A stretch of 64,000 nt of DNA, from NCBI GenBank assembly GCA_964304625.1, contig OZ199840.1, positions 177,795-241,794 on the forward strand, in the 5' to 3' direction. Position numbers and translations under genes: made by a program. This document shows positions 4,701 to 55,366 of this stretch, one piece after another. The notes beneath the pieces were generated by a model. That model saw only the letters and a program-made list of their open reading frames with translations. It was not told the DNA's origin and did not search any database. Origin of the DNA: Kudoa neothunni. Lineage: Eukaryota; Animalia; Cnidaria. The stretch's first letter is position 1. Each line of letters begins with the position of its first letter.

Positions 4701-7650
4701 ATGAAGATTCCTCTCGTCTTATTTAATATTCTGATTATATTTTTCTGTAATTTTATTACAATTGTCAAGGTATATTTAATCATTTGTAGTCATAAATAAG
4801 GATTCTGTGCATGCAGCTCCAGAGGCCTCTACCACACCTAATAAACAACTCTCATATAGCATAGCAGATAGAGAAAAATTGCATCTCACTTTATCTGGAG
4901 CGGTGTATGCTACCACAGGGAAAAAATGTCTTATAAGGAAAGGAAAAGAAGACAGTACTGATATTGAACAAATAACCCCATGTCCTGAAAGTGATGTTAC
5001 TGATGGAAATGGCAAATGCCTTCGTGCATGTTCCGGGAATGATATTAAACTTGCATTTAATGTCCTACCGCCTAGAACAAAATACATCTATGTATTTTCT
5101 GGGGATCAAGCTAATGCAATAAAAGATAAAAACAACGGCGGGGATGTGTTTGGGTTGGCAACTCGTATATCAATTTTACTAATTCAATAAAATAAATTAT
5201 AAATAGCACTCTTGGTTAATCCAGAAATGACAATTTCAACAGATGGTTCAAAAAATTAAAACTAGCAACTAAAACGTGCCCAAATGTTGCATGTCCTATT
5301 TTATACAAAGGTGTTGAATACGCCAGTGGTACTGCTGGTGGTACTTGTATAGTTGATAATGAAAATAATATGGTTGATTTTGATGTATTGATTCCTCATT
5401 ATGAGATGAAATGTACGAATTATCCGAGCTTTTTCTATCACATGCCAAATTCATATATGAAACAAAATATTGACATGTATAAACCTCAATATTATGTGAC
5501 CTACAAACATGGTGGGGGAGAAAAGAGAAATTACGTGCTTAAATTCCAAAATGCATTTCCCTCGGAAATTTGCCTCTTCCATATAAAGGATGCAGCAGGA
5601 AATGCTAATGGTAAAACAGCCAATTATACATCATCGTGTAATGCTGGAGCCGGGAAAAACTGTTATGCACCATGCGATAATGTTGAGTTGACACTTGCTG
5701 AAACTAAACCAATCGTAAAAATATTAATTCAAACTAGGCATCACAAGCTAGAAGCAACAAGTAGCGCCTTTGAAGGTTACGAAGAACGAAAATTTAGTAT
5801 AATTTTTAGTAATTGTGATATAATTATCGTTAATTATAGCTATCGTTGAGGCTGAAAATGAGAGCACACTTTTAACAACACATGCTACTACCGGAGTAAC
5901 ATTAAACCGATCCTTATTTAATCCAAATGGCGCAACTGTAAAATTCAATACTTGTGCATTTAAAGTCTTACCAGCCGATAAACTAAGAACCAGTGATGGA
6001 GTTGCTATTAAATGTTCGGATACGAACTGTGACAGTGAATGCTCAAAAAGCTCTGCTATTGGCGATTTGGCTCCAGGAAAAGCGTATATGATTGAAATAT
6101 CCGCGGGAAGCATAGATAATCACGAAGACTTCAAAGAATATTTATTTTTCAGAACAGGTATTGAAAGAGATAGATTACGTATGTCAAATATTTTTAGTTC
6201 AAAAACAAGGCTCAAACTTCGTCACTACAGTGCCTACAGCAACCGACGTGACTGCGACAGTCAAGGCGATCGACGGAACTGTGGAAACAGCAGCCACAGA
6301 ACCAACATGCTCATATTATATAAGTAAAACACGTAAGAACATTTTTGTGGAAGCAGAATGTGAAGATAGTAACCCATGCAGAGGATTTTGCAAAGATACT
6401 CAGAAACTGATAAATTTACATCCAAAAACAAATTATGATATTAAAGTCATTTCGGACAAAGATTACGGAATAAAAATATTCGAAAATGTTTCAACTAGTA
6501 AAAATTTGTTATTGCAATCTTGTTTAATTTATAATTATTAGCTTTATCGACCCTCACTCTATCTCTTAAATTCCCAGACAAAGGATTTCGAGTGGTCGGA
6601 ACGTTGGCAACTGCATTTCCAAAAGCAGTTTGTAGTTATAAAATTAAAGTCAAAAGTGGAATTAATTCAGAGATAGTTTATTCCTGTCCAACAGTTGATC
6701 CTCCTCCTTCACAGCACACTCCAACTACTACTGATACTGGCCAATCTTCCGAAAATGAAGAAACAGCAAAATCTAGGTTGATCAATGGGGCCAATTACCA
6801 CAATAATAGAATAGCAAGAGCAAGTCGTGGTGATGATATAACTCCAAGTTCATCTACGACCACTAAAATGTTACCGCTCCCGACGCAACAACTCAGTCTA
6901 AGTTCCCACCATGCAATAAATCACCATTATGTAGCAACATAATAATCAGTGAGGGTTACGAGGCTGATAAAGAATACCAAGTCTTGGTTACAGCTGTAGA
7001 CAGATCTGAAGAAATTACAATCGATATTCCTAAAAGTACAATATTTACCTACCGAATTATGAGGAGTTCTAATATATCACATATAAATAGATGCCCTACC
7101 TGAGAATCCCGAGGAAGTAGACAAACAAATCACAGTGATTATTGAAAGAGTTGGCGATATTTTAAAAATCACGTCATTGCTTCCGAAAGAACAGAAAGAA
7201 AATTCAGTGTGTCGATGGATATTAAAAAACATGAACGATCCTTCTTTGCCAATGGTGAAAAAATGTGGCACGGTTGGTAGCAATAGGTGTACACTTCCAA
7301 CATGCAAATCTTTCACAATTGAGGGCATAAGCGATATCAATGATTATAATTTAACGGTTATTCACTCCAGAGATCCTACAATTAAAGGCGTTGGAATAAT
7401 AAAACAAGGTAATTAACAATAATTAATTAACTCATAAATTTAGGAGAGACTTCCAATCAATCAAGGTAAAATTGTGCGAAAATAATATTAAATATCATTG
7501 ATTTATAGGGCCAGCACCAGCATGTATTAACACTACATTTGGTCGTGTCTGAATAAGATACCGTTTAGGATAATTAGGATTGTAATACCAATTGTTATAG
7601 TCGTTGTAACCGTTGGATTGTACTTTGGTTACAAGAAGAATATATCATAA
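4701..7650 (+). CDS. Cys-rich FN3-like multi-module type I membrane protein, family copy A (most divergent); 10 exons, two apparent -1 frameshifts in A-runs
   Basis: ATG 4701; signal peptide MKIPLVLFNILIIFFFINKDSVHA after removing intron 4747-4789. Exons are homologous to copies B-E with the same intron positions and phases. Micro-exons 7444-7465 and 7509-7523. TM IIRIVIPIVIVVVTVGLYFGY then KKNIS* (TAA 7648-7650). Frameshifts at ~5250-5255 and ~6865-6868. Confidence 0.8.
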
Positions 7651-8450: not shown

Positions 8451-10701
8451 TTTTTTTTAATTTTTTTCAATAAAATCAAGCTCAAAATATTAATATTTTA
8501 ACCTGGAAACTCATTAACATGATTTGACCAGATTTCAAATTAATAAAAATTATAATTACAGTTAGAGTCACAAGAAACTAATTCAAATTTAATATATAAT
8601 GGAGAAAAATCTATTGAAATCACATAATTTTATAAAAATAAACGTCGGAAATCCTATTTTTTTCTCTAAAGCCGCAAACGAAATTCAAAAAATAATAAAT
8701 TCAGCTAATGACTTAAAATATCAAATAATTTCTGTCATAAATACTACCTATTAACTATAGTTAACGAAAATTAATTTAATCTCTTTTCTTCTTCAATACC
8801 ACGATGCCAATTATTGCAATAACCACAACCACAGCAACACATGCAATAATGATTCTAAAATCAGTTAATTCAATATATCAGCACTTAAAAATGTTTACAT
8901 AAGTTTTGTTTTATCCCTAAAAAATATTAAATTAAAGAAATCAGTTTACTAAGCTCACCCTGAACTACTCTTTGCTCCTACGATATATAACATTAAATTA
9001 CACTGTGAACAAATAATATACCTTGTTGTATGTCAGCACCGCCAAAAATTGTATCATCTTCGACACTGTAAACAGTCAAATAATAATCATTTCCATCAGG
9101 TAAATTATTTATTTTGAATTCTTTACAGGTCACAAAGGCTGCACATCTGTCTACGCTTCTTCCCATGCAAGATTTTACTACGGCATTTGACTTGACACTG
9201 CTGTTACGTAACTCCCATTTGCATTTTGATTTATCGTTCATACTGGATGGAACTGTGGTGGTTACAATGAAACTGTTCCCGTCACGTGTAATGACGACTG
9301 ATATCAATTTTGAGGAGTCAGTTGGGTTTAATTGTGGTGTACTAATATAAGTTTCGTTTAAGAAATTCTTAATAGAGACATTAATTGTAATACTTGATTC
9401 TATAATATGCTCTTTTTGTGAAGATTTTCCAATAGCTGTGACTAAAATTTTGTATGTATTTGCTGCTTCATACTCGGGAAATGTTATGGAACTGCAAAGG
9501 GGATTTGAAGAACATGTATTTGCGCTGTTCGCGACATCAGCAAGCTGTGTATCTGAAGTGCCCGGAACTGAAGATTTCGCTGCTGTCATTGGGCCACCAT
9601 CTGCTACTATTGGCACAGCGATTCTAGCTATGTTGAGATCTGCTGAACTTACACTGGGAGGAGCAGCTGAAGGGGGGTACTGGTGCTACTGGGGCGGTAA
9701 CAGGTGTCGTTACTTTCGGCACCACAGGACATGTGTAATAGTCTGTGTAATCGTTACCAGTCTTCTTTTGTACGACATAACTACAAGTTGCAGTTGGATC
9801 AACGGAATTTAATCTTGCCTTCAATGACAAACCATCCAAGGTGATCTTATGTGTTATCGTTAACGTTGTTAATGCTAATAAACAATTAAAGAGTAAATTA
9901 TAACTTCAATAACCTGTTCGTATATCTGTGTAATCTTTTATGTCGTAATCCTTATGTGCAATCACCCTGATGTCATAAGGTTTGTTTGGCTCGAGGTCTT
10001 CTATCGTAACTTGTTCACTACAAATTCCTCTACATGGGGTGTTGCCATTGCATTTCGCGTGGAAAAAGCTGTCCAATCCAGCCGGACTCACCAAATACTC
10101 ACAGGTAGGTTCGGTTTTCTTTTGTGCAGGGTCAGTTGTGATGGCAGCTATAGCTGTAAGAGAGACTGTAGTATCTGTTTTTGTAGGATCAGTAGTTCCA
10201 TACTCTTTACTTGCTCCCTTTTCTATATAATTTATTATTTTACAAAATAAATATATTGAATTACTTGTTCTTATGAATATTTGCTCTTGTAAATTATTTG
10301 GAATGGTAGTGCCTGTAAATGTGATCTCAATCATGTAGGCTTTTCCTGCTTCAAGTCCTTGAAGCACCCATTTTGTCGAACAATCAGCTTTGCACGAACC
10401 GCTACCGCTAGTGGAGGTTTCAACAGTGCACGTTGATGTTGTTGGAGATTGTGATGTGATTTTGTCTGCAAAATAGTGTTGAAGAGTACATGTATTGAAT
10501 GTTGGATTAGTTTTTCCTTGAAATACGGTACCATCAAACGTAACACCAACATTGGTATAAGAAGAAAGCAATCCTCCATCTGGTTCAGTAATCGCTAAAG
10601 AAAATAATAAAAAATGCTCGTTAACACTCCTACTGAGTTTGGGGTCAAAAGTGACCCCATAGAAAAGTTCATTTCTTAAAAGCTATAATGATCAGCATTA
10701 A

Positions 10702-13136
10702 CCGTCTAAAGAAGCAAAAAAAACTACCCTCCATTTAAATTGGAGTTAATATGACCCCAGATTTTTATTTGATAAATTTGATTAATAAATTTTTATAAAG
10801 TTATTGGTAAATTTTTGAATTATTTCTGTTAGTAGATTTTCGAATAAATTGATAATAAATAAGTAAAATTAATCCTTTTTAATCTCGATCGCAACATCGC
10901 GAGCTTCGTCGCACACTGTCGTAAAATTAATATCCTCAAGAATATCCACTTTTAGGATAAAAAATTGCATATCTATAATCTATATAAGAAAATAAATTAT
11001 ATAATTATATCCAAAGAGAATCTCTTTAATAATTAATTCAAACAATTGTAACATTTGTTGGATGAGTCTACTTGGCAATATGGTCTATTACAATTTGAAC
11101 AACGAAGGAAGGTTTTTTTTATCATTTCCACGAGGGACATAACTACATCGTGCTATTTGGTTTTTTACTTGGGAAACATTTGTAACTGATTCGGGGAAAG
11201 ATGATTTTCTTTTGACAACTTTGTTATTATTCAAATTTCGAGTGATTAATGGTTCGTAAAAAGCTTCAGCGATTTCTTTTGTAAAGATATGACGGGTTTC
11301 ATTTTGGCTATTAAAAATATTCTTGTATAATGCAAAAGCATTAATCAAGGATAGGTCGAGAATATTGAAAATGATTATCATTGGCTATCTGCGGTTGAAT
11401 CTGCGAACAGAAACTGAGGCAAGCATTCGGCCAATGGTGTCGACTCTACCCTTTGTTTTATTGTAGCAAATGATAACTTCGGATTTTTTGTGTGTGAGGT
11501 ATTGAGGATGCTAACATTAATGGTTCCAGTTGAGATTAAAATGACAGCTTTATCTTTTTTGTTGACATACGACGTTGATACATTTTTCTCAAACAAGAAA
11601 AAAGTTGTACCGTACAATTCCCTTTTTTTTGAAGCAAGCACAGAAGTTGGAAGTTCCCCTTTTTGTGGCGAATAGTACCCAAGTATGTCAATATTTTTTT
11701 GTAATAGCTTAGATGCAAGTGGACAAGAAGAAAAAAAATAATCAGGCACAATATTTCTTCCCGAATGATATATCGGTTCAGAGAGTGATAGGACAATACC
11801 TTTAGCAACATTTAGGATTCGTTCGTTATTTCCATTTTTATCCGGATACGGAGAGATATTTAAAACATACATTTTAATTGGGTCAACAAATAAAGAAAAC
11901 TTTAGGCCATACTTTTCTGGTTTCAAAGGCATATATTGCCTAAATGGACATCTTCCCTTGAACACAACCAACTACTTGTCAATTGTGAAGTTTTGATTTG
12001 GATAGAAACACTTTGGTAATTCTCTTGTCCACATTTCTCACACCTCACGTATTGGCAAAATTTATCCGTGGTTCTTCTCTCTGACCTAATTTTTATGTCA
12101 TCGAAATAAAGAGATCGTGAGATTTGGTAAAATCTTGTCCTTGAAAAAATTTGTCTATAGATTTCTCTGCCTTCAGACACACAGAACAATTCTGCCATTG
12201 GCTCTTCCTGATCCTTGTGAACAGACATAAGGATAAGAATGCCGAATTATCCATCAAAATCTGTGGAGTCGACGTCAGTCCAATTTTCATTAAAATGGCT
12301 ACGCCCCAAAATGTGTGTACATTCAATAATTCTCTCACAAATATTTGAAGTAAAAATTATGGAAAGACGGCCCAACATATTACAAACTCCCTGTAAACAA
12401 TAGGCCATAGGAACGGGATGCGAGTTCATTATATTTTCAGCTGATGTTTTAGAGATAACAGGTTTGGTTAAGCTCCAGGTGATTCCACCTTTACAAGTTG
12501 TGAAGCAATCGGTTTCCACAATTTCATCTGAAGATTCTTAAATTTCAGGCATAATGTCTTCAAACTCATTTCCTAACAATTCGCATTCACCACCACTCAT
12601 CGTCCCGCGAAAAAATTGCGTACAATGTTGAGGTTGCACATCCATTACTGTAATATAATGTTGAATAAAACATGATAATTGCTTTATCACATAATTTAAT
12701 ATACTTAAAATACAATGCGAAAAATATTATTTTCGTACTAACTCTTAAAGCAAACACAACGCTATTTTGTTAATTCAACGATCATGAATGAAATGAAGAT
12801 GCAGTAAGCCGATGAAGATTAAATGAGATTAATTAATGTATTTAATATCGTTTTACTCGAAATTCAACCATTAGAATTTTTTTTAATACGTTATCATTGT
12901 GATTATAAAAATTTATCAAATAAAAATCTGGGGTCAATATGACCCCAAAGTAATTGAAGGATAGTTTTCTTCATTAAATGTTACAGTCATTATTTTTTTA
13001 TTATTTTCCGTTTAAATTACCACTACGAAAATATAGGAGAATAGATAGAATCTTGTGACAAAAAGAAGAATCCTAACAAAGTTACTGGAAATCAATTAGG
13101 CTTTGAGGTCGTATTGACCCCAATGTCTTCAGAGGG
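10702..13136 (-). mobile_element. Full-length-sized piggyBac (PGBD4-like) with pseudogenised transposase, nested in the outer element
   Basis: TTAA at 10698-10701 and 13137-13140. TIR ccgtctaaaga vs ccctctgaaga. Inverted subterminal repeats 10745-10780 / 12910-12950. Transposase fragments 11088-12519 (FKGRCPFRQYMPLKPEKYGLKF; NILDLSLINAFALY). Confidence 0.85.
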
Positions 13137-13260
13137 TTAAAGCCTCAAATTTATCGTTGTTAATCCATCTCTATATATGTCATTTGATATGCTAAAGTAT
13201 CGTTATTAAATTTGAACCTATTCCATTTTTATTCACGTATTAACTTAAATTCACCTTTAA

Positions 13261-14175
13261 CCCTCGAAGGAAGGTGCTCGGAAAAATTCCACCGGGAACG
13301 ATGGGGCTCATTTTTGACCACAGTAATTTTAGCTTCTTATTGCGACTATGCGTATCAAATCTCATAATTACAATCAAAACGTTTAAAAACTAGTAATCTA
13401 TTTATTTCATGCTGAAAATAATTTATTTAACATAAAAAATGTAATAACCCCGCAGAATGAATGTTATATGCATACGAACAAATGTGACATGTATAAAACA
13501 AATCACTATCACGTACATCAAAATATACCAGAGTCTATCGCAGCAGGACAAAAAATAACAACGTTAAAACGCGTTTAAGGCACAAAACTCAGGAGTGACA
13601 TGATGACAGTATTACATCACGAGGCCCGATGAATAACGTCCATCTGGATGTTGCGGTTCTAGCTTCATTGTACATTTCTTTGTTTATGTTGCTAAAATAT
13701 TTAATCACAAGGCGAGAATAATTATATTAGTTTATTATTTACATATATTATCTATTTATTTAAAAAATTATTTTTCCATTACCTCTTGATTTTTTAAAGT
13801 ATTCCGTACATTGATAAAACACAAGTATTTATTACTAAAGATTCGATACATTTATTTCGACTATATATGTAAAAACTCAAACCATTCTACGGAGATTACA
13901 AGAAATTAAAACGATATAATAACTTAAGTTGTACCACAAATCGAGGAAATGTCTAAATTGGGGTCATTTTTAACCCTCAAATAATGAATTATATTGTAAC
14001 ATTAACAATTCGACATAATAAATAAGTTTAAATTTTATCTTTGACACTAGAATCTTTCTAATGTTTTAGACCCTTCTAAAATTTTCTAGAAGGATCCTGA
14101 ATTGCGGTAGGCATAACACGACCCCCTGGGTCGGATCTTGCCCCATGATGTTCCATTCGGCCATCGGAAGTGATA
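13261..14175 (+). mobile_element. Third, internally deleted piggyBac-like element inside the intron-3 insertion (right end uncertain)
   Basis: TTAA 13257-13260 followed by ccctcgaagga, the same start as the 40648 element. Short transposase-like remnant near 13430-13470 resembles the reverse complement of 121-150. A ggggtc...ccc motif lies at ~13960. Confidence 0.5.
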
Positions 14176-16555
14176 ACAAATCTACTATAGAACTCATCTA
14201 TTTGTGATAGATTTGGGATTTGGTTCCTCTCTAAGGTATTTTAAAAGCCAAACTAATATTAATTTATCCGTAAATATAAAGTTGCCATATTTATACCCAA
14301 GTTTAATAACTGTTAACGTTAGACTTACAATTAGAAACATCACCAGTTATTAAATATGGCTAATAATATTTAGAAAATTTGTAGGAATAAAGCATATGAA
14401 TTAACAGAAATATGCGGTGTCACACAAGCTATACAAACTGAACAATCAATAAAATTGTAGAAGGAAAATTCTTTATTTATATTTTTTTGAATGGCGCTTA
14501 TTATAACCAGGTTAGTCCTACTTTAAATAATAAAATTACTTCGCTACAAACTACCTGATTCAATCATATATACAAAAATCTATTGAAAAATGAGCAATTT
14601 AATTTATTAATTCGTTTGTGAAAAATCAAGTTCGAAATATATTCTGCCTTTTTCTTTTGTATTTGAAAAATAATTGCTAAACCAATCAAACATGTAATTC
14701 CTCCACATGATGTGTAATTTTAACCACAGCGGATACTGAAAAGCAAAAAATTGATAACGGGTGATTTGTTTTTAATAAATATTTGATCGAAACGTACTTA
14801 TTTGTACATACTGACCCCACGCTGTTTGTCCTATTTATCACCATATCCGTGCAGTACCCAAAAAATCAAATTTATATCTTTTATTAAATTTTGTTTAAAA
14901 TGCAATGCAATGCAATTAAATTTATATTAATATTAAATTCTTTTGAAATAATTGCTTCCAGACTTGTAATCAAATTTTTTTTATAAAAATCTGTCTCCGC
15001 AAAGATATAATTGTCCACCACTGAACATGAAGAAAATATAATGTTAGTATAATTGAAGAAATTTCAAACAAATATGACACAGGAAACGTTGCCAACAAGA
15101 CTCAAATTTCGCGAAAAAGAGGTTTAAATTAAAGGGTAAAATGTTCCATTTGCCCAAGAGAGCATCATAACAAACATTCAACTCGCCACTAAAATTGTAT
15201 GAAACCTATGTTTAACCCACATATACCGATATAATGTGGAAGTTGCATCTAAAATTAAAATTGATTATATTTTAAAAATTATAATTTTTCTTATTTTTGA
15301 TGGAGTAATTATTCATAAAACTACTATTTCTATCCTGGGGTCAAAAACGACCCCAAACTCATTTAAAGGGGAAAATCGTCGACTCAGTACGAGTGTTAAT
15401 AGAAGTATTACCATATTTAATTTTCGCGTAGCCGTCAAAATTAACAGTGGCTTGTATGTCGTGATGTCTGGTTTGGATCAAAATACCGTAAATTACTTTG
15501 CCTGTAATACCATTTAACACAACATCCTTACACGGAGCATAACAGCTTTTAACGTTACTACCACAAACAGACTTGTATGATTTATCGGTTGCTGTGTCCA
15601 GTCCATCTTTAAGACTGAACAAGCATATTTCAGACGACGGGGAGTTTGTGAATTTTATTCCCACCTTATTATCAGTTTTGGCAACAATATAAAACTGAGG
15701 CTCATAAATCGCTAAAGTTTTCTCCATATATTTATTGGGCATATTGTAGAAGAAGCTAGGATAATTTACACACCTTACTTCGTAATGAGGTAGCAATAAA
15801 TCAAAATCAACTATATTTTTAGTATTTTCGGCAATACAAGTGTCTCCTGCGGTACCATCATCATATTTAATATCTTTGTAATAAATAGGACAATTTACGC
15901 GTGCACAAGTTTTCGCCACCAATTTCAGCTTATTTGGGTCGGTACTGCCTGTAGACAGAGATACTGTAAATTGTGGATTAGCCAATAATGCTAAATTCGA
16001 TTGAGTTTTATATTAAATAATAATTATTTACGTATCGAATATCCGAATACTTTTGATTCTGCTCCTTGAGTTTTGGTTTTAACGGCAGCTGTGTCAGTGC
16101 CATCGTAGACGTAAATGTATTTTGTTCGTGGTGATAGCTGATCGTAGTTGACTTTATTGTCATCAGTATTACAAACGACAACACATTTATTAGCATCTCC
16201 ATCAGTATTGTCATGGGGAGGGCAGCTTGCGATGTCTACAAACGTATTTGCTGTTCCTGAACCACCAACTGATATTTCTGCTTCTTTAGATCGCATTAAA
16301 CGGCACTTTTTGCTAGCTCCATAATCGGAACCTTCAAGTTTGAGTTTAATTTTGTAGTCACCAGTTGTTTCCTTTACAATCTGGTATTTCAGCGTTTTCG
16401 TTGGAGGCGCAACTGCAGGTGAAGCTGCACCAGGAGAACCTGGATTTCCATTAGCATTGGCTGTGCTTGATATTAAAACACCTAAACTTACATTAGTATT
16501 AAAATTAACTCAGGAAGATACCTAAAACAAGGTAGAGAAATCCAACTATCCTCAT

Positions 16556-17034
16556 GATTGACAATTAAATGACCTACCAATTGATGATTCTGAATACAAT
16601 TGACCCGAATTTCACTCAATTGTGGATATAATGATTCATTCATTGTCAGATAGCAAAACTTAGAATAGACAACAATTATTCAAATGACTAAAAAATTAAT
16701 CTAAACTAATTTTTTGCCATAAAACTCAAATTGGTGTGGTAAATTAATTATGACATTTTAAGGAATAGAAGTTTTCACACGATATATTTTTTTAAGATAA
16801 TGTCGAAGTAAAATATTAAGCATTAGCAAAATAATCAGGCAATGCACTTTCGTGTATTCGTTCGTGTTAGTTTTTTTACGAATTAATTACCATGCCTAAA
16901 TTTTGGCACGAAATACGGACGAAATTTATTTTAACTATAAATTCCAATCTTGAATCGCGAAGGAAATCGAATTCATGGGTTTTATATGGGGAGGTTTAAT
17001 TTTTGGCACATATCGAAATAATGACTCAATAAAT
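16556..17034 (-). promoter_or_regulatory. Conserved upstream block of copy B, duplicate of 20068-20544
   Basis: Near-identical to the copy C upstream region over ~470 bp. The first ~200-280 bp are also conserved upstream of D and E. Regulatory function is inferred from position and conservation. Confidence 0.55.
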
Positions 17035-17067: not shown

Positions 17068-20067
17068 TTAGTCTCTTTTCTTCTTCAATACCACGATGCC
17101 AACTATTGCAATAACCATAACCACAGCAACGCATGCAATAATAATTCTAAAATCAGTTAATTCAAATATCAGCATTTAAAAATGTTTACATTAGTTTGGT
17201 TTTATTCCTAAAAAATATTAAATTTGATAAAAGCATATTATTAAGCTCACCTTGAACTACTCTTTGCTCCTACAATACATAACATTAAATTACATTGTGA
17301 ACAAATAATATACCTTGTTGTATGTCAGCACCGCCAAAAATTGTAGCATCTTCAACACTGTAAACAGTCAAATAATAATCATTTCCATCAGGTAAATTAT
17401 TTATTTTGAATTCTTTACAGGTCACAAAGGCTGCACATCTGTCTACGCTTCTTCCCATGCAAGATTTTACTACGGCATTTGACTTGACACTGCTGTTACG
17501 TAACTCCCATTTGCATTTTGATTTATCGTTCATACTGGATGGAACTGTGGTGGTTACAATGAAACTGTTCCCGTCACGTGTAATGACGACTGATATCAAT
17601 TTTGAGGAGTCAGTTGGGTTTAATTGTGGTGCACCTAATATAAGTTTCGTTTAAGAAATTCTTAATAGAGACATTAATTGTAATACTTGATTCTATAATA
17701 TGCTCTTTTTGTGAAGATTTTCCAATAGCTGTGACTAAAATTTTGTATGTATTTGCTGCTTCATACTCGGGAAATGTTATGGAACTGCAAAGGGGATTTG
17801 AAGAACATGTATTTGCGCTGTTCGCGACATCAGCAAGCTGTGTATCTGAAGTGCCCGGAACTGAAGATTTCGCTGCTGTCATTGGGCCACCATCTGCTAC
17901 TATTGGCACAGCGATTCTAGCTATGTTGAGATCTGCTGAACTTACACTGGGAGGAGCAGCTGAAGGGGGTACTGGTGCTACTGGGGCGGTAACAGGTGTC
18001 GTTACTTTCGGCACCACAGGACATGTGTAATAGTCTGTGTAATCGTTACCAGTCTTCTTTTGTACGACATAACTACAAGTTGCAGTTGGATCCACGGAAT
18101 TTAATCGTGCCTTCAATGACAAACCATCCAATGTGATCTTATGTGTTATCGTTAATGTTGTTAATGCTATTAAGAATTTAAAGAGTAAATTATAATTTCA
18201 ATAACCTGTTTGTATATTTGTGTAATCTTTTATGTCGTAATCCTTATGTGCAATCACCCTGATATCATAAGGTTTGTTTGGCTCGAGGTCTTCTATCGTA
18301 ACTTGTTCACTGCAAATTCCTCTACATGGGGTGTTGCCATTGCATTTCGCGTGGAAAAAGCTATCTAATCCGGTTGGACTTATTAAATACTCACAGGTAG
18401 GTTCATTTTTCTTATCTGCAGATACAGTTGTGGTAGCAACCGTAGCTGTAAGAGAGACTGTCGTGTCTGTCTTTGTAGGATCAGTAGTTCCATATTCTTT
18501 ACTTTCTCCCTTTTCTTTATAATTCGTTATTTTTTAAAATTAATATAATAATTTACTTGTTCTTATGAATATATATTCTTTAAAATCACTTGGAAGATTG
18601 TCGCCTGCAAATGTGATCTCAATCATGTAGGCTTTTCCTGCTTCAAGTCCTTGAAGCACCCATTTTGTCGAACAATCAGTTTTGCACGTAGTGCCAGTGG
18701 AGGTTGCAGTGGTGCATGTTGATGTTGTTGGTGATCCTGATGTGATTTTGTCTGCAAAATAGTGTTTAAGAGTACAACTATTGAATGTTGGATTAGTTTT
18801 TCCTTGAAATACGGTACCATCAAATGTAACACCATCTTTGGCGTAAGAAGAAAGCAATCCTCCATCTGGTTCAGTAATCGCTAAGGAAAATAAAAAAACT
18901 CCCATTAATATAAGTATTACCATATTTAGTTTGTTTGTAACCTTCCAAACTAGCACCGGCGGATTCTATGTTGTGATGCCTTGTTTGGATCAAAATATCA
19001 TAAATCAACTTGCCTTCAATACCGTTTAACACAACATCCTTACAAGGAGCATAACATTTTTTAGCAGTATCACCACAAACTGAAGTATATTGTGAACTTT
19101 GTTCTGCAATCTTAGTATCTTTAAGACTGAACAAGCATATTTCAGACGATGGGGAATTGGTGAATTTAATTCCCACTTTGTGTTCAGCGTTGGCAACAAT
19201 ATAAAATTGAGGATTATAAATGGCTATGCTTTCCTTCATATATTGATTTGGCATATTGTAAAAGAAACTGGGATATTTTTCGCATCTTAATTCGTAATGC
19301 GGTAACAATAGATCAAAATCAACTTTATTAACGTTTTCGGTATTACAAGTGTTCGTAGTGGCAGCATCTGTATATTTAATATCTTTATAATAAATGTGAC
19401 AATTTACGGGCGCACAAGTTTTTGCACCGAATTTCAGCTTATTACTATCGGTAGTGTCGATGGACACGGCAATTTGTGGATTAGCCAATAATGCTAAGTT
19501 TTAATGATTTTTATATTAAATTTAATCTATTTACGTATTGAATAACCGAACACTTTTGATCCCGCACCTTGAGTTTTATCTTTAACATCAGCTACGGTAC
19601 CACCTACGTAGACGAATATGTATTTGGTTCTTGGTGACATCTCACTGTAATCAAAATCATTTGTATCAGTGTCACAGTTGACAACACATTTACCATTAAG
19701 AGTAGAATCATTAACTTTAGCAGCGCAGCTGTTGATGTCCGTAAACGCAGCTGCCGTTGTTGTACTCCCGGCACCCCCTGCAATTTCTGCTTCGTTAGAT
19801 CGTCTTATAAGGCATTTTTGGTCAGTTCCATATTCAGAGCCTTCCAATTTGAGTTTAATTTTGACTGGGTTAGGATTTAATCCTTTGACAATCTGGTATT
19901 TCAGAGTTTTCGTTGGAAGCGCAACTGCAGGTGAAGCTGCACCAGGAGAACCTGGATTTCCATTAGTATTGGCTGTGCTTGATATTAAAACACCTAAACT
20001 TACATTAGTATTAAAATTAACTCAGGAAGATACCTAAAACAAGGTAGAGAAATCCATCTGTTCGCAT
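17068..20067 (-). CDS. Family copy C, intact; 871-aa type I membrane protein with ~7 Cys-rich FN3-like modules
   Basis: Exons 20067-20034, 19993-19535, 19493-18921, 18880-18557, 18514-18206, 18166-17687, 17634-17314, 17269-17251, 17207-17190 and 17146-17068 total 2616 nt with an open frame and GT-AG introns of 39-52 nt. Signal MRTDGFLYLVLGVLISSTA; TM IIIIACVAVVMVIAIVGIVVL-KKKRD*. Confidence 0.9.
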
Positions 20068-20544
20068 GGTTGACAATTAAATAAACTACCAATTGATGGT
20101 TCTGAATACAATTGATCCGAATTCCACTCATGTGGATATAATGATTCATTCATTGTCAGACAGCAAAACTTATACTAGATAATAATTATTCAAGCTATTA
20201 AAAAATTAATCTAAACTAATTTTTTGCCATAAAACTCAAATTGGTGTGGTAAATTAAATATGACTTTTTAAGGAGTAAAGTTTTCACACGATATATTTTT
20301 TTAAGGTAATATCGAAGTAAAATATTAAGCTTTAGCAAAATAATCAGGCAATGCACTTTCGTGTATTCGTTCGTGTTAGTTTTTTTACGAATTAATTACC
20401 ATGCCTAAATTTTGGCACGAAATACGGACGAAATTTATTTTAACTATAAATTCCAATCTCGAATCGCGAACGAAATCGAATTTATGGGTTTTATATGGGG
20501 AGGTTTAATTTTTGGCACATATCGAAATAATGACTCAATAAATT
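20068..20544 (-). promoter_or_regulatory. Conserved upstream block (5'UTR/promoter) of copy C
   Basis: Shared with the B, D and E upstream regions (caattg repeats, gtggatataatgattcattcattgtcaga, ctcaaattggtgtggta). Confidence 0.55.
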
Positions 20545-24552: not shown

Positions 24553-26727
24553 CAGTAATGAATCAGCCCTACGTATCTCGTTCGTGCGTACATTTTATAT
24601 TATATGTATATTCAACGGTTTGATTATTTTAAAATGATTTTGAAAATTACATAATTAGAAAATGACTCGCTTTGAATAGTTTACAAGCATAAATATCACT
24701 AATAAACTAAAAATAAAAAGTAGCGTGAGGACCAGTCGTACGTACCTTATTTGCCTAGACATCAAAATTTAAATTTGCCTTTTTTCTGTTTCTAATACAT
24801 TCAAGCAATTATTTAGTTTTTATAATTATAAAAACAATAGTATAGCATATTCTATTTGCAATGGCGGGTATTAAATACATATTTAAATAAAGTGATATCA
24901 TAATTTATTTATTTAAATATATTAAATGATTGTTAAAATTATTACTATATAATAATAGCCGGCGAGATGATAATAACACACACCACGTTGTTGGTTTATA
25001 GCTTCAGTTATTTTATCATATCTAATTCCTAATGTCCCAAAACCGAAAAATGGCTATTTATAGATCTTTGAAATTAAAATATGATATAATAATGTATTAT
25101 GAGTCCAGGCGGAGCCTTGGTGCAAAAGCTGGCCCAGTACGACAATTGAAACGTCCTTCAACTTCGACATTAAATTTGGTTTAACAGCAAAAGCAGAAAA
25201 TTGTTTCTTCTGTTAGGATTGGTACTGCAAGTGTTAGTCGTAAAGCATTGTAAAATGGCTACAATAAGGAATTGGATGACGATGTTTATAATTGGATCCA
25301 ACACATAAAACCGAACAAAACATCACTTTCTGCTGGCGACATCGTAGAAAAATGGAATCAGATTGCAATGTCAGATTATGGAGGCAATTTTGATGTTACT
25401 AGAGGTTGGGTTCGTAGATTCTCAAAAAGATACAACATAAAAGGGGGAAACTTCCACAAAGAAGAAAATGAAATCAAATCTACTGATGTTGACGAATGGA
25501 TTCCAAAATTAAAAAGTATATTGGAAAAATACGATGAGAAAAATGTTTTCAATATTGACGAATCCACATTATTTTATCAACAGCGAAGAAGTAAATTAAC
25601 ATTTATTCTCTGTTATGACGATTGTTAGAGGGAAGCTATGGGACCTCACATGAATTCCAATGTAGGGGCTATAAGCAATCAAAAATAAGAACTTTAATAT
25701 TATTTGGTGCCTTTGTGCTCGGCAAAAAATTAGATCCTCCTGTTATTGAGAAATTAAAAGAACAAGATATTTCAAAAACATGAAAGATACACCATTTCCT
25801 TACGGAACAAATTCAAATGCTTGGATGACTCCAGAAATTTTTTCAACATATCACATTGAACTAACTAATAAATTTTCAAAATCAAATATAGAAATAGTTT
25901 TATTTCTTGATAACGCGAACTGTCATCCAGATATTCAACTATCAAATATTGATCTAGAGTTCCTTCCGAAAAACACCACTAATGTCTTGCAACCATTAAA
26001 CCATGGTGTCATACATTCATTCAAAACGAATTATAAAGGACATTTAATACAAAAATTTATCATAAATGTAGAAGAGGAATTACCTCTAACGCCACCTGAT
26101 ATATTACAAGCAATAATGTTAATTAAAAGAGCCTGGAATGAAGTTCCTGCTGAGACAATTATTAACTGTTTTAAAGGGGCTGGGTTTCAGAAGTCGGTTA
26201 CCGATTATTACTCTTCTGTAACTGAATTAGATAATTTTTTTCAGGATCCAATTGTAGTGTTTCAAGATGATAACAACAAAATAAACACCGAGATCAACAT
26301 TATGATACAAGAAGAGAAGAATGTTCCAGTATGTGTTTTTGAAAATGATGAATTAGAGCCTATTACGGTCGAAACGTAACATCGTTCCTCAGATTCAGAA
26401 TCTGAAGATTAATTAATTGATAAAAATGTTATCTCTTCAAAGACAGCCTTATTTTATTTAGACTTGTTTGGCAACTATTTTAAACACTATTGCTCAAAGA
26501 AGCGGATGTTAATGACTAATTCTACTGCAGACGTTTATTCAATATTAAATGCTAATTTTAAACAGAAAAAAATAACTGATTTTTTCCAGTAATGTTTTAT
26601 TTATAGCGAGTTTTGTGTTTTATTAGTTTTTGTACGCATGCTCAAAAAGTACGTATATCCAGCCGGGAACGGTAGTATGTACCGTTTCCACATCCCCAAG
26701 GGATTTTCGTACGACCGATCCATACTG
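24553..26727 (+). mobile_element. pogo/Tigger transposon with pseudogenised transposase
   Basis: TA-cagta...tactg-TA ends. ORFs 25272-25628 (GWVRRFSKRY, VFNIDESTLFY) and 25780-26379 (NAWMT, LFLDNANCH, FLPKNTTNVLQPLNHGVI). C-terminal KQKKITDFFQ* near 26560-26592. Confidence 0.9.
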
Positions 26728-30511: not shown

Positions 30512-32914
30512 CCCTTTGACGCCGAATGTTGCCATATGGCAACATCGGATTGTTGTTATAATTCCTCAATGAGTATTATATTTAACAACTAAAGCATTAA
30601 AAAAAAGTTAAATTAATCTTTATTTTTTTATCAAACGCTAAATTAGATAATTTTTAAAATTTCTTAGTAAAAATACGTCATAAATTGAAATTTTTCAAAC
30701 AATAAAAAGGTCATTATATGGCACTAAATTTACAACCTAATAATTATTTTAACTGCATTAAAAAAATATATATTATAAAATGGTACATTTTTTCTACAGA
30801 AATTTGTATAGATCATATAATCTTAAAGAACTCTAGTTTGGAGTATTAGCTTAATGCTTGTTGCCATATGGCAACATTCGGCACACGGGCCGTTTTTCAG
30901 GATTAACATTGCGAAGGATGCAGATTTAGTGAAAAAGATAAATGTTGATTGTAAAATAGTTGAGGAATTAATATTGCTTCCAGATGCTGATAAATCTGAC
31001 GCCGGGAATATATCTGATGATGAAAGCAACAACCTACAATGTGATTCGCTTTCAGACGCCAGCACTGATAAAGAAGAATACAATAGTGATCATCCTAATT
31101 ACGTAAAAAACGTATCACATACAATCGAAGAAAGTTTATTATCAATCGTGGAATTTAAAATGGAACCAATATTGGATCCTTATTTATATTTCAATAGATT
31201 CTTTACAGATGAATTGTTCGAGCTCATATGCAAAGAAACTAATAATTATACCATAGAGAACAATTCAAATGTTAGAACCACAACAAACGAAATAAAATTA
31301 TATGTTGGGATGCTTATACATGTGTCAATAATCAAATTACCACGGATAACAAACTATTGGTGTAGTGAACTCAATTGTAGTTCAATATCCGAAAAAATGC
31401 CCTGAGATCGATTTGAGTTCATCCAAAGATATATACATTTTTGCGATAATAATAAACTAGCGACTTCTAGAACCAGTAAAGATCACGACCGTTTCTTTAA
31501 AATGAGACCCCTGTTAAATATGATAAGGGAAGAATGCCTAAAAATTGAACCTGAATACAACCAGTGTGTGGATGAGCAGATGATTCCAATTTAAAGGTAA
31601 GTCTGGCCTCAAGAGATACTTGCCTTCGAAACCTACAAAATGGGGCTTCAAGGTTTTCACTAGAAATGGCTCTGGTGGTATAGTGCACGACTTTTTTTTT
31701 TTGAAGATGGGGATTTTTCCCTACGATGGTGAAAGTTCTGGTTTTCACTTCTTTGACATCGTATTAAAATTAGCAGGATCCATAAAGAACGGAAGCAAAC
31801 ATCATTTTTATTATGATAATTATTTTTCCACGTTATCATTACACTCGATTCTGCTGAAGATGGGCCATCATTCAATCGGTACAATAAGATCGAATCGTCT
31901 TAGAAATTGTCCATTTAGTGATGATAAGATGTTTAGGAAGCTAAAATGAGGAAAGTTACGAATATGCTTAACACCTTGACGGGTTGTTATAAAACAAACA
32001 TTGCACGTTGGTTAGATGGGTCAGCTGTAACAATGACATCAACCGCTCACTCTATTTTCCCCTTGAGTTCTATTGATAGATATGATCGAAAGGCAAAAAA
32101 GGTTATAAGAATTGGACTGCCCCAATATAATTAAAATGTACAACCAAATATGGGCGGTGTAGATTTTTTTCGACATGCTAATGGTTCTGTGTAGACTTGA
32201 CCACAAGTCCAAAAAGTGGTACGAGAGAATCTTCTTGTGGGCGATAAACCAATGCATCCTTAACGGATGGCTCTCGTATAAACATCAATGTTCTTTACAT
32301 GAAATCCCAACAAAGAAAAGCTTGTGTTTGTTAGATTTCAGTGTTTACGGTAAGCGAACGATTGATGCATGAGAATCAAGTGGTAAGTGTTGCTAGTAAA
32401 AGAGGGAGGCCATCCACATAAGGTATCACTATCTCGATCCCTATGTCTAGTAGAATCTATCATCTACCAGAATCAAAAGTAAGTGCTATTGTGCGTTTTA
32501 ACGAAATTTCCTACTTCCCTTCATGTACATCAACGAAAGTTAGGTGTAAATTGTGCGGAATGCACTCTAGAATTGTACGCATGAAATATAAAATTCATCT
32601 GTGCTTAAATATCAAAGGAAATTGTTATTTAAATTTCCACAAACAAAATTAGAAATATTTGTTGTTATTAAATGTGTTTAAATGTGCGTAATTTTAAGTG
32701 CAAAGAGGTCTTCCTACCAACCGCGCGTGCGCAATATTGTTTTGGGGATTAAGGTGTCTCCGAATGTTGCCACATGGCAACATTTAATTAGATATGGTTC
32801 CTAATAAAATATTTCCGAAATTTTTATATATGTTGTTTATTACTAAAAATATAGATATTTTTCCGCCTTTAAAAAAAATAAATTATTACAGCTTGATTTT
32901 CAGGCATGAAAGGG
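30512..32914 (+). mobile_element. piggyBac (PGBD2/3-like) transposon with pseudogenised transposase
   Basis: TTAA-cccttt...aaaggg-TTAA. Palindromic repeat tgttgccatatggcaaca at ~30528, ~30859 and ~32765. Motifs LPSKPTKWGFKVF, YYDNYFSTL and GTIRSNRL, plus a C-terminal Cys-rich domain (CKLC...HLCL...CYLNFH). Confidence 0.92.
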
Positions 32915-37028: not shown

Positions 37029-37430
37029 ATAAAAACTAATCTTATTTGGCATGAATTATCATATTTATGTCTCTAATTTTTGGTGAAATAGTTTTTAGCA
37101 GATTGAACAAGTTTAAGGTGTATTTCGGCTGGGGCAAGTTAGTGATCCCAGTTGGTCACCCGCGTTCTGTTATCGTAGTTAGAACAGTAAGGGTTAATAA
37201 ATAATTGGGATCACAAAAAACAAATTCAAATTTAATATATAATGGAGAAAAATCTATTGAACTCACATAATTAATAAAAACATTGGAGATCATATTTTCT
37301 CTCTAAAGTCGCAAGCGAAATTCAAAAAACAATAAATTCAACCAATGATTCAAAATATAAAATAATGCTACGTGATCGAAAAATTTCTATCATAAATATT
37401 ACCTATAAACTATAGTTAACAAAAATTAAT

Positions 37431-40400
37431 TTAATCTCTTTTCTTCTTCAATACCACGATGCCAACTATTGCAATAACCATAACCACAGCAACGCATGCA
37501 ATAATAATTCTAAAATCAGTTAATTCAAATATCAGCATTTAAAAATGTTTACATTAGTTTGGTTTTATTCCTAAAAAATATTAAATTTGATAAAAGCATA
37601 TTATTAAGCTCACCCTGAACTACTCTTTGCTCCTACGATATATAACATTAAATTACACTGTGAACAAATAATATACCTTGTTGTATGTCAGCACCGCCAA
37701 AAATTGTATCATCTTCAACACTGTAAACAGTCAAATAATAATCATTTCCATCAGGTAAATTATTTATTTTGAATTCTTTACAGGTCACAAAGGCAGCACA
37801 TCTGTCTACGTTTTTTCTCATGCAAGATTTTACCACCGCATTAGACTTGACACTACTGTTACGTAACTCCCATCTGCATTTTGATTTATCGTTCATACTG
37901 GATGGAACTGTGGTGGTTACAATGAAACTGTCCCCATCACGTGTAATGACGACTGATATCAATTTTGAGGAGTCAGTTGGGTTTAATTGTGGTGCAGCTA
38001 ATACAAGTTTCGTTTAAAAAATTCTTAATAGAGACATTAATTGTAATACTTGATTCTATAATATGCTCTTTTTGTGAAGATTTTCCAATAGCTGTGACTA
38101 AAATTTTGTATGTATTTGCTGCTTCATACTCGGGAAATGTTATGGAACTGCAAAGGGGGTTTGAAGAACATGTGTTTGCGCTGTTCGCGACATCAGCAAG
38201 CTGTGTATCTGAAGTATCCGGAACTGAAGATTTCGCTATTGTCATTGGGCCACCATCTGCTACCATTGGCACAGCAATTCTAGCTATGTTGAGATCTGCG
38301 GAACTTAAACTAGGAGGGGCAGCTAAAGGGGGTGCTGGTGCTACTGGGGCGGTAACAGGTGTCGTTACTTTCGGCACCACAGGACATGTGTAATAGTCTG
38401 TGTAATCGTTACCAGTCTTCTTTTGTACGACATAACTGCAAGTTGCAGTTGGATCCACGGAATTTAATCGTGCCTTCAATGACAAACCATCCAATGTGAT
38501 CTTATGTGTTATCGTTAATGTTGTTAATGCTATTAAGAATTTAAAGAGTAAATTATAATTTCAATAACCTGTTTGTATATTTGTGTAATCTTTTATGTCG
38601 TAATCCTTATGTGCAATCACCCTGATATCATAAGGTTTGTTTGGCTCGAGGTCTTCTATCGTAACTTGTTCACTGCAAATTCCTCTACATGGGGTGTTGC
38701 CATTGCATTTCGCGTGGAAAAAGCTATCTAATCCGGTTGGACTTATTAAATACTCACATGTAGGTTCATCTTTCTTTTGATCATTTGTAGCTGCGGTAGT
38801 AGCTATAGCTGTAAGAGAGACTGTCGTGTCTGTCTTTGTTGATGCGGTAGCTGAAAATGATTTGCTTGCTTCTTTTTCTTTATAATTCATTATTTTTTAA
38901 TATAAGTATGATGATTTACTTGTTCTTATGAATATATTTTCTTTATAATTCGTTGAAACACCATTTACTTCTAATGTGATCTCAATCATGTACGCTTTTC
39001 CCGGTGTAAGTCTTTGAATCACCAATTTTGTTGTGCAATCAGTTTTGCAACTGCCACTTTCTGTACTGGTATTATCGCATGTTGTTGTTGTTAAGGTGTC
39101 TGGTTTGATTTTGTCTGCTAAATAATGTTTAAGAGTACATTTATTAATTATTGGATCAGTTGTTCTTTTAAACAGGACAATATCAAACGACACTCCCTCA
39201 TGTGTGTATTCTGACAGGAATCCTGAAGTTGGTTCAGTAATTGCTAAATAAAATAAGAAAAAAATGCATATTAATATAAGGGTTACCAATTTTAGTTTGC
39301 TCGTAACCTATCAAATTACCACTAGCAGGTTTTATGTCGTGATGCCTTGTTTGGATTAAAATTTTATAAATCTTTTTATCCGTGATACCATTAAGTTCGA
39401 CGTACTTACATGGGGGCGTAACAATCTTTACCGGCACCACCACAAACGGACGTATATGATTGATCAGTTGCTGTATTCAAACCATCTTTTAGACGGAACA
39501 AACATATTTCAGATGATAGGGAATTGGTAAACTTAACTCCGACTTTTCCTTCGGTTTTTTCTACAATATAAAACTGAGGCTCATACATGGCTATTTTTTC
39601 CTTCATATATTGATTGGGCATATTGTAAAAGAAACCGGGATATTTTTCGCACCTCACCTCGTAATGCGGTAACAATAAATCAAAGTCAATTGCATTTGCT
39701 GTATTATAATTAACACAGTCTTCCCCCTTGGTACCATCTGCATATTTAATATCCTTATAATAAATAGGACAATCTACTGGTGCACATGTTTTTGCTGCCA
39801 ATTTCAGTTTATTTGCATCGGCAGTACCTGTAACCATAGACACGCTAATTAGTGGACTAGCCAATAATGCTAAATTAAATTTCTTTCTATGATAAGTTAA
39901 ATTTATTTACGTATTGAATATCCGAACACTTTTGATCCAGCTCCACTAACTGCATTTTGAACATTAGCTGTTTCAATGTCAACATAAACATGTATGTATT
40001 TGGTTCTCGGTGACATCTTTTTGTAATCAAAGGTATTCGTATCAGTTTCACAGTCGACGACACATTTATTATTTTCAGCATCACTAACCTTAGCATTGCA
40101 GTTGTCGATGTTGGTAAACGCAGCTGGTGTCGTATTCGCAGCATTCGCTGCAATTTCTACTTCGTTTGATCGCCTTATAAGGCATTTTTTGCCAGCTCCA
40201 TATTCAGAGCCTTCAAGTTTGATTTTAATTTCGTATGTGCTATCAGATGCTTTTTTAACAATCTGATATTTCAGAGTTTTATTTGGCGCTTCAGCTGCAG
40301 GAACAGCCGCAACTGCACCTGGAGGACTTGATATTACAACAGTATTTGCTATACCTGATATTAAAACACCTAAACTTACATTGGTATTAAAATTAACTCA

Positions 40401-40443
40401 GGAAGATACCTAAAACAAGGTAGAGAAATCCAGCTATTTTCAT
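37431..40443 (-). CDS. Family copy D; intact except one +1 frameshift in a homopolymer in exon 3
   Basis: ATG 40443 (MKIAGFLYLVLG|VLISG). Exon ORFs 39406-39864/39234-39443, 38897-39289, 38561-38890, 37973-38494 and 37648-37962. Same micro-exons and TM-KKKRD*. G5 at 39412-39416 turns CYAPCK into CYAPM*. Confidence 0.85.
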
Positions 40444-40647
40444 GGTTGACAATTAAATGAGCTACCAATTGATGGTTCGGAATACAATTGACCCGAATTC
40501 CACTCATCTGTGGATATAATAATTCATTCATTGTCAGATAGCAAAACTTATGCTAGACAATAATTATTCAAGTTATTAAAAAATTTATCTAAACCAATTT
40601 TTTACCATCTAGCTCAAATCGGTGTGGTAGATTAATTACGACTTTAA

Positions 40648-54381: not shown

Positions 54382-55366
54382 TTAAAACTTCGCAATTGTC
54401 ATAATTGAAAGTCATGGATGTTATCTTCTACATCAATGACTTTGTCAATGTTTTCTGGCGGTAAAATGACAATATAGGTACATTCATCAGGGAAAAATTC
54501 ATCAACCTGATCATATAGCATCGCTTAGTCTGACTAGCCTCTCGAAACTCATGACAGGGAATTAGGGAACCTCGTGGGTTAATAATAAAGACATAATATT
54601 GTGAAGCATTTCATCATATAAAGAATAAAACAACTTTTTTTAATTTTACATAAAATAAACTTTAAGTTATTTAGAATATTTTTAAATAAAACGTATTATT
54701 ATGAAAAAATTTCTGTTTTTCTATTTAAGTCAATTATTAGTAAGAAAATTTGAAAATGTGAGTACTCACCTATTATCTATTATGTATAAATTAACTTTTC
54801 ATAATTCTTAATTGCTACTTGAAAATCGTAAAATTTCGTCATTTCAAAATTTTTTTATAAATTTTCGTTAAATATTTAAAAAATATAGATAGAAACTTAG
54901 AAATTATTAAAATCAAGCATCACGATTATTTGAATATTCATTAATTTTAATATCGTCCACAATGTTACGTAAGAAGGTTCGTTTTATATTGACTTAGAAA
55001 ATTATATTATTCTCAATTAACAAGAATTATTTACTCAAGCTTTTTATCATAATTTTTTTCCAATAAAGTCAAGCTCAAAATATTAATATTTTAATCTTGA
55101 AATTTATTAACATAATCAAATCACAAGAGCTTAAACTATAATTACAGTCATAACAAACTAATTCGGGATTAATATAAAATAGATGAAAATTTATGAAATC
55201 ACATAATTAAAAAAAGCATAGGAGATCATATTTTCTCTCTAACGTCGCAAATAAAATTCAAAAAACAATAAATTCAACCAATGATTTAAAATATCAAATA
55301 ATGTTACGTGGTCGAAAAATTTTTATCATAAATATTACCTATAAACTATAGTTAACAAAAATTAAT

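Follow-up and report, generated by a model that had tools for sequence, protein, structure and literature searches.

What keeps neighbouring genes of a tandem array almost identical next to the membrane while their outer domains differ strongly? The question is raised by a stretch of 64,000 nucleotides of the myxozoan Kudoa neothunni (contig OZ199840.1, assembly GCA_964304625.1), referred to below as the window, which is AT-rich (GC content ~30%) and holds four closely related genes, B to E, of which gene C is the focus here. A preliminary description, made from the letters alone, had proposed that loops of the outer domains, more divergent than the neighbouring non-coding DNA, are exposed surfaces resembling complementarity-determining regions (CDRs) and are under diversifying selection. 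We reach a different explanation, which we consider probable as a whole: the two ends of the genes are homogenised by gene conversion, and the part between them is an old pool of diverged cassettes with near-neutral loops. The genome used for searches comprises 40,260,978 bases in 4 contigs (three of 17,154,348, 12,040,071 and 11,048,340), and searches, fold predictions and codon analyses were all performed exon by exon.

As read from the sequence, the product of gene C would start with a signal peptide and continue with six beta-sandwich domains (one per exon), the residues of two micro-exons, a transmembrane (TM) helix and the tail KKKRD; the N-terminus is hydrophobic and a 21-residue hydrophobic run lies close to the C-terminus. 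The large exons are all of phase 1-1, the introns measure 39-52 nt, and among B-E only C keeps its frame intact in the assembly. Its parts, all on the minus strand, are the following:

17068-20067 (-), gene C: 10 exons, 871 codons, with frame and GT/AG boundaries conserved in the four-gene alignment
20068-20270 (-), conserved 5' flank (promoter and 5' untranslated region, UTR), which with exon 1 and intron 1 makes up a homogenised block
20034-20067 (-), exon 1
19994-20033 (-), intron 1, part of the homogenised 5' block
19535-19993 (-), exon 2: predicted disordered N-terminal stretch and membrane-distal beta-sandwich domain; the most variable exon
18921-19493 (-), exon 3: second ectodomain module, 191 codons
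18557-18880 (-), exon 4: FN3-like domain
18672-18719 (-), Cys-bounded loop of exon 4 named in the preliminary description (TCTTAT...CKTDC)
18206-18514 (-), exon 5: FN3-like domain, holding the switch from variable to homogenised sequence
18393-18446 (-), exon 5 loop named in the preliminary description (ATVATT...NEPTC)
17687-18166 (-), exon 6
17314-17634 (-), exon 7: membrane-proximal domain
17251-17269 (-), micro-exon 8, 19 nt
17190-17207 (-), micro-exon 9, 18 nt
17068-17146 (-), exon 10, the TM exon
17068-18412 (-), homogenised 3' block, made up of the remainder of exon 5, exons 6-10 and introns 5-9

From exon 2 into the first third of exon 5, pairs of the genes B-E share 0.67-0.89 of their nucleotides; the corresponding value is 0.91-1.00 in the exons from the later part of exon 5 to the stop codon. 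The change is abrupt, since within exon 5 identity is 0.67-0.85 before position 18412 and 0.91-0.99 after it. The polarised divergence that had been described was thus recovered, with the switch lying inside an exon and not at an exon border. Likewise, exons 6, 7 and the TM exon are as similar as had been stated (0.91-1.00), although the exon count had to be revised to 10, with two micro-exons preceding the TM exon. The reading frame is maintained through both micro-exons (within 17147-17313, following exon 7) in each of the four copies, and B departs from C, D and E at ~17% of positions over intron 8 and exon 9.

Non-coding and silent sites follow the same profile. Identity in introns 5-9 is mostly 0.86-1.00 (0.78-0.87 for introns 5 and 8 of B), compared to 0.48-0.91 in introns 2-4, and with the splice signals trimmed intron 2 is 48-68% identical among B-E. 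Across the family, intron distance in the variable block is 0.22-0.33, a figure based on only ~30 usable bases per intron. At the other end, identity is 0.88-0.93 in the 5' flank and 0.80-1.00 in intron 1. Between the genes of the window, silent divergence (dS) amounts to 0.38-1.1 in exons 2-4 versus 0.015-0.115 in exons 6-7, and exon 7 also has the lowest non-synonymous divergence (dN). The loops are therefore not more diverged than their non-coding neighbourhood, as had been claimed: introns 2-4 (48-91% identical) and silent sites (dS 0.38-1.1) are equally diverged. The observation behind that claim, near-identical DNA upstream of B and C, is itself correct (0.92-0.96), but this DNA reflects mosaic ancestry and is a separately homogenised flank; thus, it provides no yardstick for the neighbourhood in which the loops diverged.

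The contrast between the blocks extends to a subfamily set of 29 close copies retrieved from the genome, most of which are open exon by exon. Amino acid identity to C in these copies rises from 50-72% (exon 2) and 43-79% (exon 4) to 68-91% (exon 5) and 84-99% (exon 7), and the same gradient is present in all 29. In exon 7, dS is 0.08 within a cluster at 186-460 kb of chromosome C3 versus 0.20-0.23 otherwise, whereas dS in exons 2-3 is 0.5-0.65 independent of location. In addition, read contigs have a word depth of 50-370 in the 3' block of D versus 3-21 in its variable block, as expected when many copies share 3' words.

A sliding nearest-relative scan of C against the family copies assigned successive parts of the gene to different relatives, and resolved conversion tracts within the 3' block:

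5' flank and exon 1 of C (-), nearest copy B
exons 2-3 of C (-), nearest copies L021/L020, on other chromosomes or at distant sites
exon 4 of C (-), nearest copy B
start of exon 5 of C (-), nearest copies L008/L007
18093-18384 (-), D-like conversion tract in C, 99-100% identical, 21 consecutive informative sites
17432-18075 (-), B-like conversion tract in C, windows 100% identical, 28 informative sites in two runs
17103-17354 (-), second D-like conversion tract in C, 16 informative sites

The 79 informative sites of the 3' block of C fall into only 11 runs (permutation runs test, p<1e-4). In the variable block, the assignment to L021 is borne out by silent sites, with an exon 3 dS of 0.22 between C and L021 versus 0.63 between C and B (0.22-0.29 versus 0.42-0.63 over exons 2-3), and trees specific to each sequence window gained hundreds of lnL (log-likelihood) units. 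Low dS in the 3' block with the introns included, alternating donors and an effect of proximity were all found. Taken together, low silent divergence, alternating tracts and the proximity effect demonstrate gene conversion or unequal exchange, beyond what protein constraint alone would produce, and the uniform membrane end is a product of gene conversion between copies.

The explanation that we propose is as follows. Frequent gene conversion or unequal exchange keeps two blocks uniform, one being the 5' flank with exon 1 and the other reaching from mid exon 5 to the 3' UTR, with introns and silent sites homogenised together with the coding sequence. Exons 2 to 5a (the part of exon 5 before the switch) represent an old, well-mixed pool of diverged cassettes in which exchange is rarer and takes place also between chromosomes; C carries successive B-like, L021-like, B-like and L008-like segments. 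Within the cassettes, beta strands are held by purifying selection, and low-complexity loops drift approximately neutrally and gain slippage-type indels. Judging from the predicted architecture, the products would be type I membrane proteins which may meet the host or other parasite cells at the surface.

The location of the variation was assessed on AlphaFold2 models built on family alignments of exons 2 and 4. The exon 4 model (pLDDT 77.7, pTM 0.70) retrieved almost exclusively FN3, monobody or Tencon structures among its top 20 Foldseek matches (probability 0.97-1.0, TM-score 0.55-0.66), with weak E-values (0.03-0.3). In the exon 2 model (pLDDT 73.9), a disordered N-terminal stretch of 24 residues precedes a beta sandwich, for which Foldseek searches of the PDB and the ESM Atlas returned only generic beta sandwiches with TM-scores below 0.5. 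At the level of sequence profiles, Pfam fn3 (PF00041) scored 23.6 bits against exon 5 (E 6e-5), under its gathering cut-off of 25, and had no match in exons 2, 3, 4, 6 and 7 nor in the 57 family members (28 + 29) scanned. Comparison of the six domain exons with hhalign gave a best E-value of 0.0026, between exons 4 and 5 over 29 columns; a common origin of the six is plausible on this similarity. Four cysteines are invariant in the exon 7 domain, which also carries a C-x-W motif; weak matches to its profile are multi-CUB proteins (P0018, BMP1-like, 5 stretches) and titin Fn3 (E 0.0019), and one family member matches Pfam CUB_M02D8_5_3rd (E 0.0034).

Internal indels and candidate selected sites all lie outside the predicted beta strands. 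In alignments of 26-29 paralogues, gapped columns number 0/40 and 0/39 in strands versus 34/122 and 8/73 elsewhere (exons 2 and 4, respectively), in agreement with the description of variation concentrated in loops. All eight loop strings that it gave for exons 4 and 5 of B-E are present as quoted, the exon 4 string of E being exact but read across a frame change of the assembly. The Cys-bounded loop of exon 4 is rich in S, T, G, D and N (47% Ser+Thr) with 7-12 residues between the cysteines; such low-complexity loops fit slippage indels, and their Ser/Thr-rich composition suggests that they are perhaps O-glycosylated. Calling these segments CDR-like is thus fair as topology, as they lie between strands of predicted beta sandwiches, but not as evidence of selection.

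Whether the loops evolve faster than neutrality allows was addressed with codon models, for which our own likelihood implementation matched IQ-TREE (identical lnL, -5514.91). Under M0, the exon-wide dN/dS ratio (omega) is 0.69 in exon 2, 0.29 in exon 3, 0.53 in exon 4 and 0.44 in exon 5. With classes defined by structure, omega is 0.32 for strands and 0.89 for loops in exon 2, the latter showing no difference from 1, and 0.28 for strands and 0.71 (below 1) for loops in exon 4; the Cys-bounded loop singled out in the preliminary description also gives 0.71. Among B-E alone, pairwise dN/dS of the two loops named in that description is unusably noisy (16-18 codons, dS from 0.17 to saturated). Phylogenetically independent sister pairs, which require no tree, give loop values of 0.79 (exon 2) and 0.73 (exon 4), approaching ~1 in the youngest pairs, and strand values of 0.21-0.34. 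Correspondingly, nucleotide diversity (pi) in loops is about equal at codon positions 1+2 and at position 3, while in strands it is far lower at positions 1+2. It is therefore likely, with the same assurance that we attach to the conversion explanation as a whole, that variation in the outer loops accrues close to the neutral rate.

The rival explanation that survives best is the one originally put forward, namely that host immunity or partner recognition exerts diversifying selection on CDR-like outer loops, the membrane end being merely conserved. It finds support in site models, in which M2a fits omega of 1.9-3.2 for 4-20% of sites, and in the distribution of sites with a posterior >0.9 in exon 2 (19/122 non-strand versus 0/40 strand columns, Fisher p 0.004). 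Twice the log-likelihood difference (2dlnL) between M1a and M2a was:

exon 2: exon tree 56.9, window-specific trees 66.0, gap-masked window trees 32.0
exon 3: exon tree 14.1, window-specific trees 4.1, gap-masked window trees 13.2
exon 4: exon tree 16.5, window-specific trees 8.6, gap-masked window trees 0.8
exon 5: exon tree 44.4, window-specific trees 22.5, gap-masked window trees 3.3

The control exons 6 and 7 (all columns, window trees) are non-significant, with 2dlnL of 2.8 and 2.6, as diversifying selection restricted to the outer domains would have it. For comparison, exon-2-sized data were simulated on nine block genealogies without positive selection and analysed identically. In this recombination null 2dlnL ranged over 0-24.8, exceeding 5.99 in 8/12 replicates, with fitted omega2 of 1.75-2.0 for 3-25% of sites. 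The likelihood-ratio tests (LRTs) of M1a against M2a were for this reason no longer taken at face value, given that a mosaic without selection reaches 2dlnL of 24.8 and omega2 of 1.75-2.0. On window trees the null range covers exons 3, 4 and 5, and the signals of exons 4 and 5 vanish when indel-adjacent columns are masked. Loop-class omega of 0.71-0.89, with 0.73-0.79 in sister pairs, also stands against this explanation, as do silent sites and introns of the variable block that are no less diverged than the loops, and its argument from upstream identity is accounted for by mosaic ancestry. For the two loops on which the preliminary description had based its proposal, selection is accordingly not upheld: the LRTs of exons 4 and 5 fall within the null, and what was found is essentially the pattern which it had itself set against its reading, that is, loop dN/dS of at most 1 with equal silent and intron divergence. 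A site-model check of the kind that it had suggested, run here as M1a against M2a, leaves exons 3-5 inside the recombination null and exon 2 alone above it. Overall, we consider diversifying selection unlikely as the general cause of loop divergence.

Several points weigh against conversion combined with near-neutral loops and should be taken into account. Foremost, 2dlnL of exon 2 (66.0, or 32.0 gap-masked) exceeds all 12 null replicates, and so neutrality of every loop site is not established; approximate methods place the residual signal at ~9-20% of its codons with omega ~2-2.5 (e.g., alignment columns 120 and 148 of the candidate columns 45, 47, 79, 120, 148 and 151), which is suggestive of diversifying selection at a minority of the loop sites in exon 2. 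Omega of the exon 5 loop is 1.57 (2dlnL of 5.5 against omega=1), a signal that is gone once gap-adjacent columns are masked. The null represents one arbitrary recombination scenario with 12 replicates only, and the site models were run with fixed branch lengths and a single free scale factor. Silent-site constraint could lower dS of the 3' block a little, although intron identity argues otherwise. Finally, a search for RNA runs containing gene C returned none, and we infer its expression, splicing and surface location from the sequence.

A further explanation, that B, D and E are decaying pseudogenes whose divergence is relaxed drift, draws on the frameshifts that these copies carry in the assembly and on the transposon-bearing insert in B. 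The copies and their interruptions are the following, together with gene A:

8718-10612 (-), paralogue B, exons 4-10, with one extra nt within a C run of exon 6 and one nt missing where exon 7 begins
10613-15395 (.), insert in intron 3 of B, 4.8 kb, without counterpart in the other paralogues
11378-11971 (-), piggyBac-type transposase open reading frame (ORF) in the insert of B (Pfam DDE_Tnp_1_7, E 1.8e-21)
15396-16791 (-), paralogue B, upstream region and exons 1-3
37392-40645 (-), paralogue D, with one frameshift in exon 3 (C5 run, 39412-39416)
55328-58567 (-), paralogue E, with assembly frameshifts in exon 2 (two), exon 4 and exon 6
4795-7410 (+), gene A, a distant family member (30-47% amino acid identity), convergent with B

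Read contigs from four runs of one specimen were compared with D only. Both X2 contigs crossing the run at 39412 (depth 17.6 of 17.6) are one letter shorter than the assembly, and with one letter fewer at 39412-39416, D regains the family motif CYAPCK. Thus, an in-frame D exists in the reads, and the D of the assembly is an error or a variant; the view that D is certainly a pseudogene was dropped after this comparison. The K. neothunni assembly (40.2 Mb, three chromosomes) was obtained from Thunnus albacares HiFi data at ~7x coverage (PMC12239612), and at such coverage other homopolymer frameshifts of the genome may be errors as well. The indels had originally been described as in-frame; in the assembly this is contradicted by the frameshifts of E, D and B, that of D being contradicted in turn by the read contigs. 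Since, moreover, strands are under purifying selection throughout the subfamily, each exon is open in most of the 29 paralogues and intact copies show the same pattern, pseudogene decay is a very improbable source of the divergence. The least probable explanation is a gradient of protein constraint alone, in which purifying selection is stronger near the membrane and gene conversion plays no part, because, although amino acid identity between chromosomes rises from ~55% in exon 2 to ~85% in exon 7 and dN is lowest in exon 7, the 3' block shows a 5-10 fold lower silent divergence, its introns 5-9 resemble each other as closely as its exons do, 100% identical tracts switch between two donors and dS of exon 7 tracks physical proximity.

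Some further observations concern the copies and the DNA between them. The segment at 16803-17034, downstream of C and upstream of B, is 98% identical to 20312-20543 upstream of C, and these flanks mark the edges of a tandem duplication unit of ~3.5 kb. Introns of this genome are usually ~40 nt long, compared to the 4.8 kb inserted in intron 3 of B. In exon 6 of E (55914-56519), a shift of +8, of which 7 nt are a tandem duplication, affects a linker rich in Pro, Ala and Ser; the frame is restored by +1 ~165 nt downstream, and the shifted part holds four stops. Remnants of DNA transposons lie between C and D, one with a DDE_1 (pogo/Tc-like) endonuclease ORF (25780-26379) and one with an N-terminal piggyBac transposase fragment (30854-31405). 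Between D and E, an ORF at 49958-50461 (+) encodes a protease-inhibitor domain of the Kunitz/BPTI type (E 2e-16). No match was returned when the window was scanned for Rfam families and tRNAs.

The family extends far beyond the window. A search of the genome with the exon 7 peptide gave at least 150 matches (302 candidates) on all three chromosomes, and 28 of the matches listed lie within the first 460 kb (37267-460614) of the 11 Mb chromosome C3, where the array sits close to the chromosome end. Outside this genome, the exon 7 profile found 24 matches with 26-61% identity among 1.84 billion proteins, none of them a named protein; most are short unnamed ORFs from AT-rich metagenome or Logan contigs, and one of the matching contigs shows the same short-intron layout. 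A word-based protein search with exon 3 gave no match. Two contigs with a GC content of 24-33%, L051:1-2036 (Logan SRR33849685) and L050 (ENA ERZ28624939), carry relatives of exons 5-7 (27-47% identity) as ORFs 30-70 nt apart, which is the exon layout of gene C; relatives of this type probably come from other myxozoans. In the genome paper of K. neothunni (PMC12239612) the words surface, fibronectin and gene family do not occur, and VSP-like and RIFIN-like variable surface families have been reported in the myxozoan Sphaerospora molnari (bioRxiv 10.64898/2026.02.11.705288). The gene family described here appears to be undescribed, whereas the conversion mechanism behind its pattern is an ordinary one of known kind.

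Among known systems, the closest parallel in mechanism is offered by the variable exons of clustered protocadherins, for which Noonan et al. reportedly described restricted gene conversion in 2004. Both are tandem paralogues with multi-domain ectodomains, in which the 3' part next to the membrane is homogenised by conversion and diversity persists in the outer domains. The Kudoa family differs in being FN3-like instead of having the cadherin fold, with one phase 1-1 exon per domain and exchange between chromosomes, and it has none of the shared constant-region exons or alternative promoters of the protocadherin type. Like the variant antigens of parasites, such as Trypanosoma VSG, Giardia VSP and Plasmodium var/rifin, the Kudoa genes form a large family whose single-pass, surface-type products vary in their outer part and are conserved at the membrane end; mosaics arise by conversion of segments, and the arrays are dense and lie close to a chromosome end. 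No Pfam match to VSG, VSP, var or rifin was found in the exons or the 57 family members. Unlike those systems, which are marked by switching or one-at-a-time expression, the Kudoa family is known here from genes alone and its loops are not demonstrated to be positively selected; in addition, Kudoa plasmodia live within muscle fibres.

Within cnidarians, Huene et al. are said to have described in 2022 the allorecognition (Alr) complex of Hydractinia as one of immunoglobulin-superfamily genes. Comparing architecture only, both are clustered type I membrane proteins of a cnidarian lineage with tandem beta-sandwich domains that are barely recognised by sequence profiles, and in both the variation is concentrated in the outermost domain; the exon 4 domain of the Kudoa family matches FN3 and not V-set folds. 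As to the FN3 scaffold, the predicted fold of exon 4 agrees with FN3 and monobodies, and its variable segments correspond by topology to the BC, C-E and FG loops, which are those diversified in monobodies. The domains of the family depart from FN3 in the sub-threshold Pfam fn3 score (exon 5 alone), in extra disulphide-type cysteines and in a long C-E excursion, and the exon 2 domain is without a clear structural match. Combining these likenesses, the family might be a myxozoan system of surface variation, or of Alr-like self/non-self recognition, built on FN3-like scaffolds, in which the 5' flank and the 3' half would act as homology arms for swapping outer cassettes among >100 copies on all chromosomes, with selection keeping the exon 2 loops diverse; we regard this as a speculative extension that is rather unlikely to hold in full.

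The apparent signature of diversifying selection in this family thus derives mostly from mosaic ancestry and gene conversion, and standard site-model tests are inflated in such arrays. Myxozoans are economically important parasites of fish, and how they handle their hosts is poorly known. With >100 FN3-like membrane proteins built as cassette-like mosaics, the family is a good candidate for interaction with the host or between cells, and this candidate role makes it a target for expression and localisation studies.

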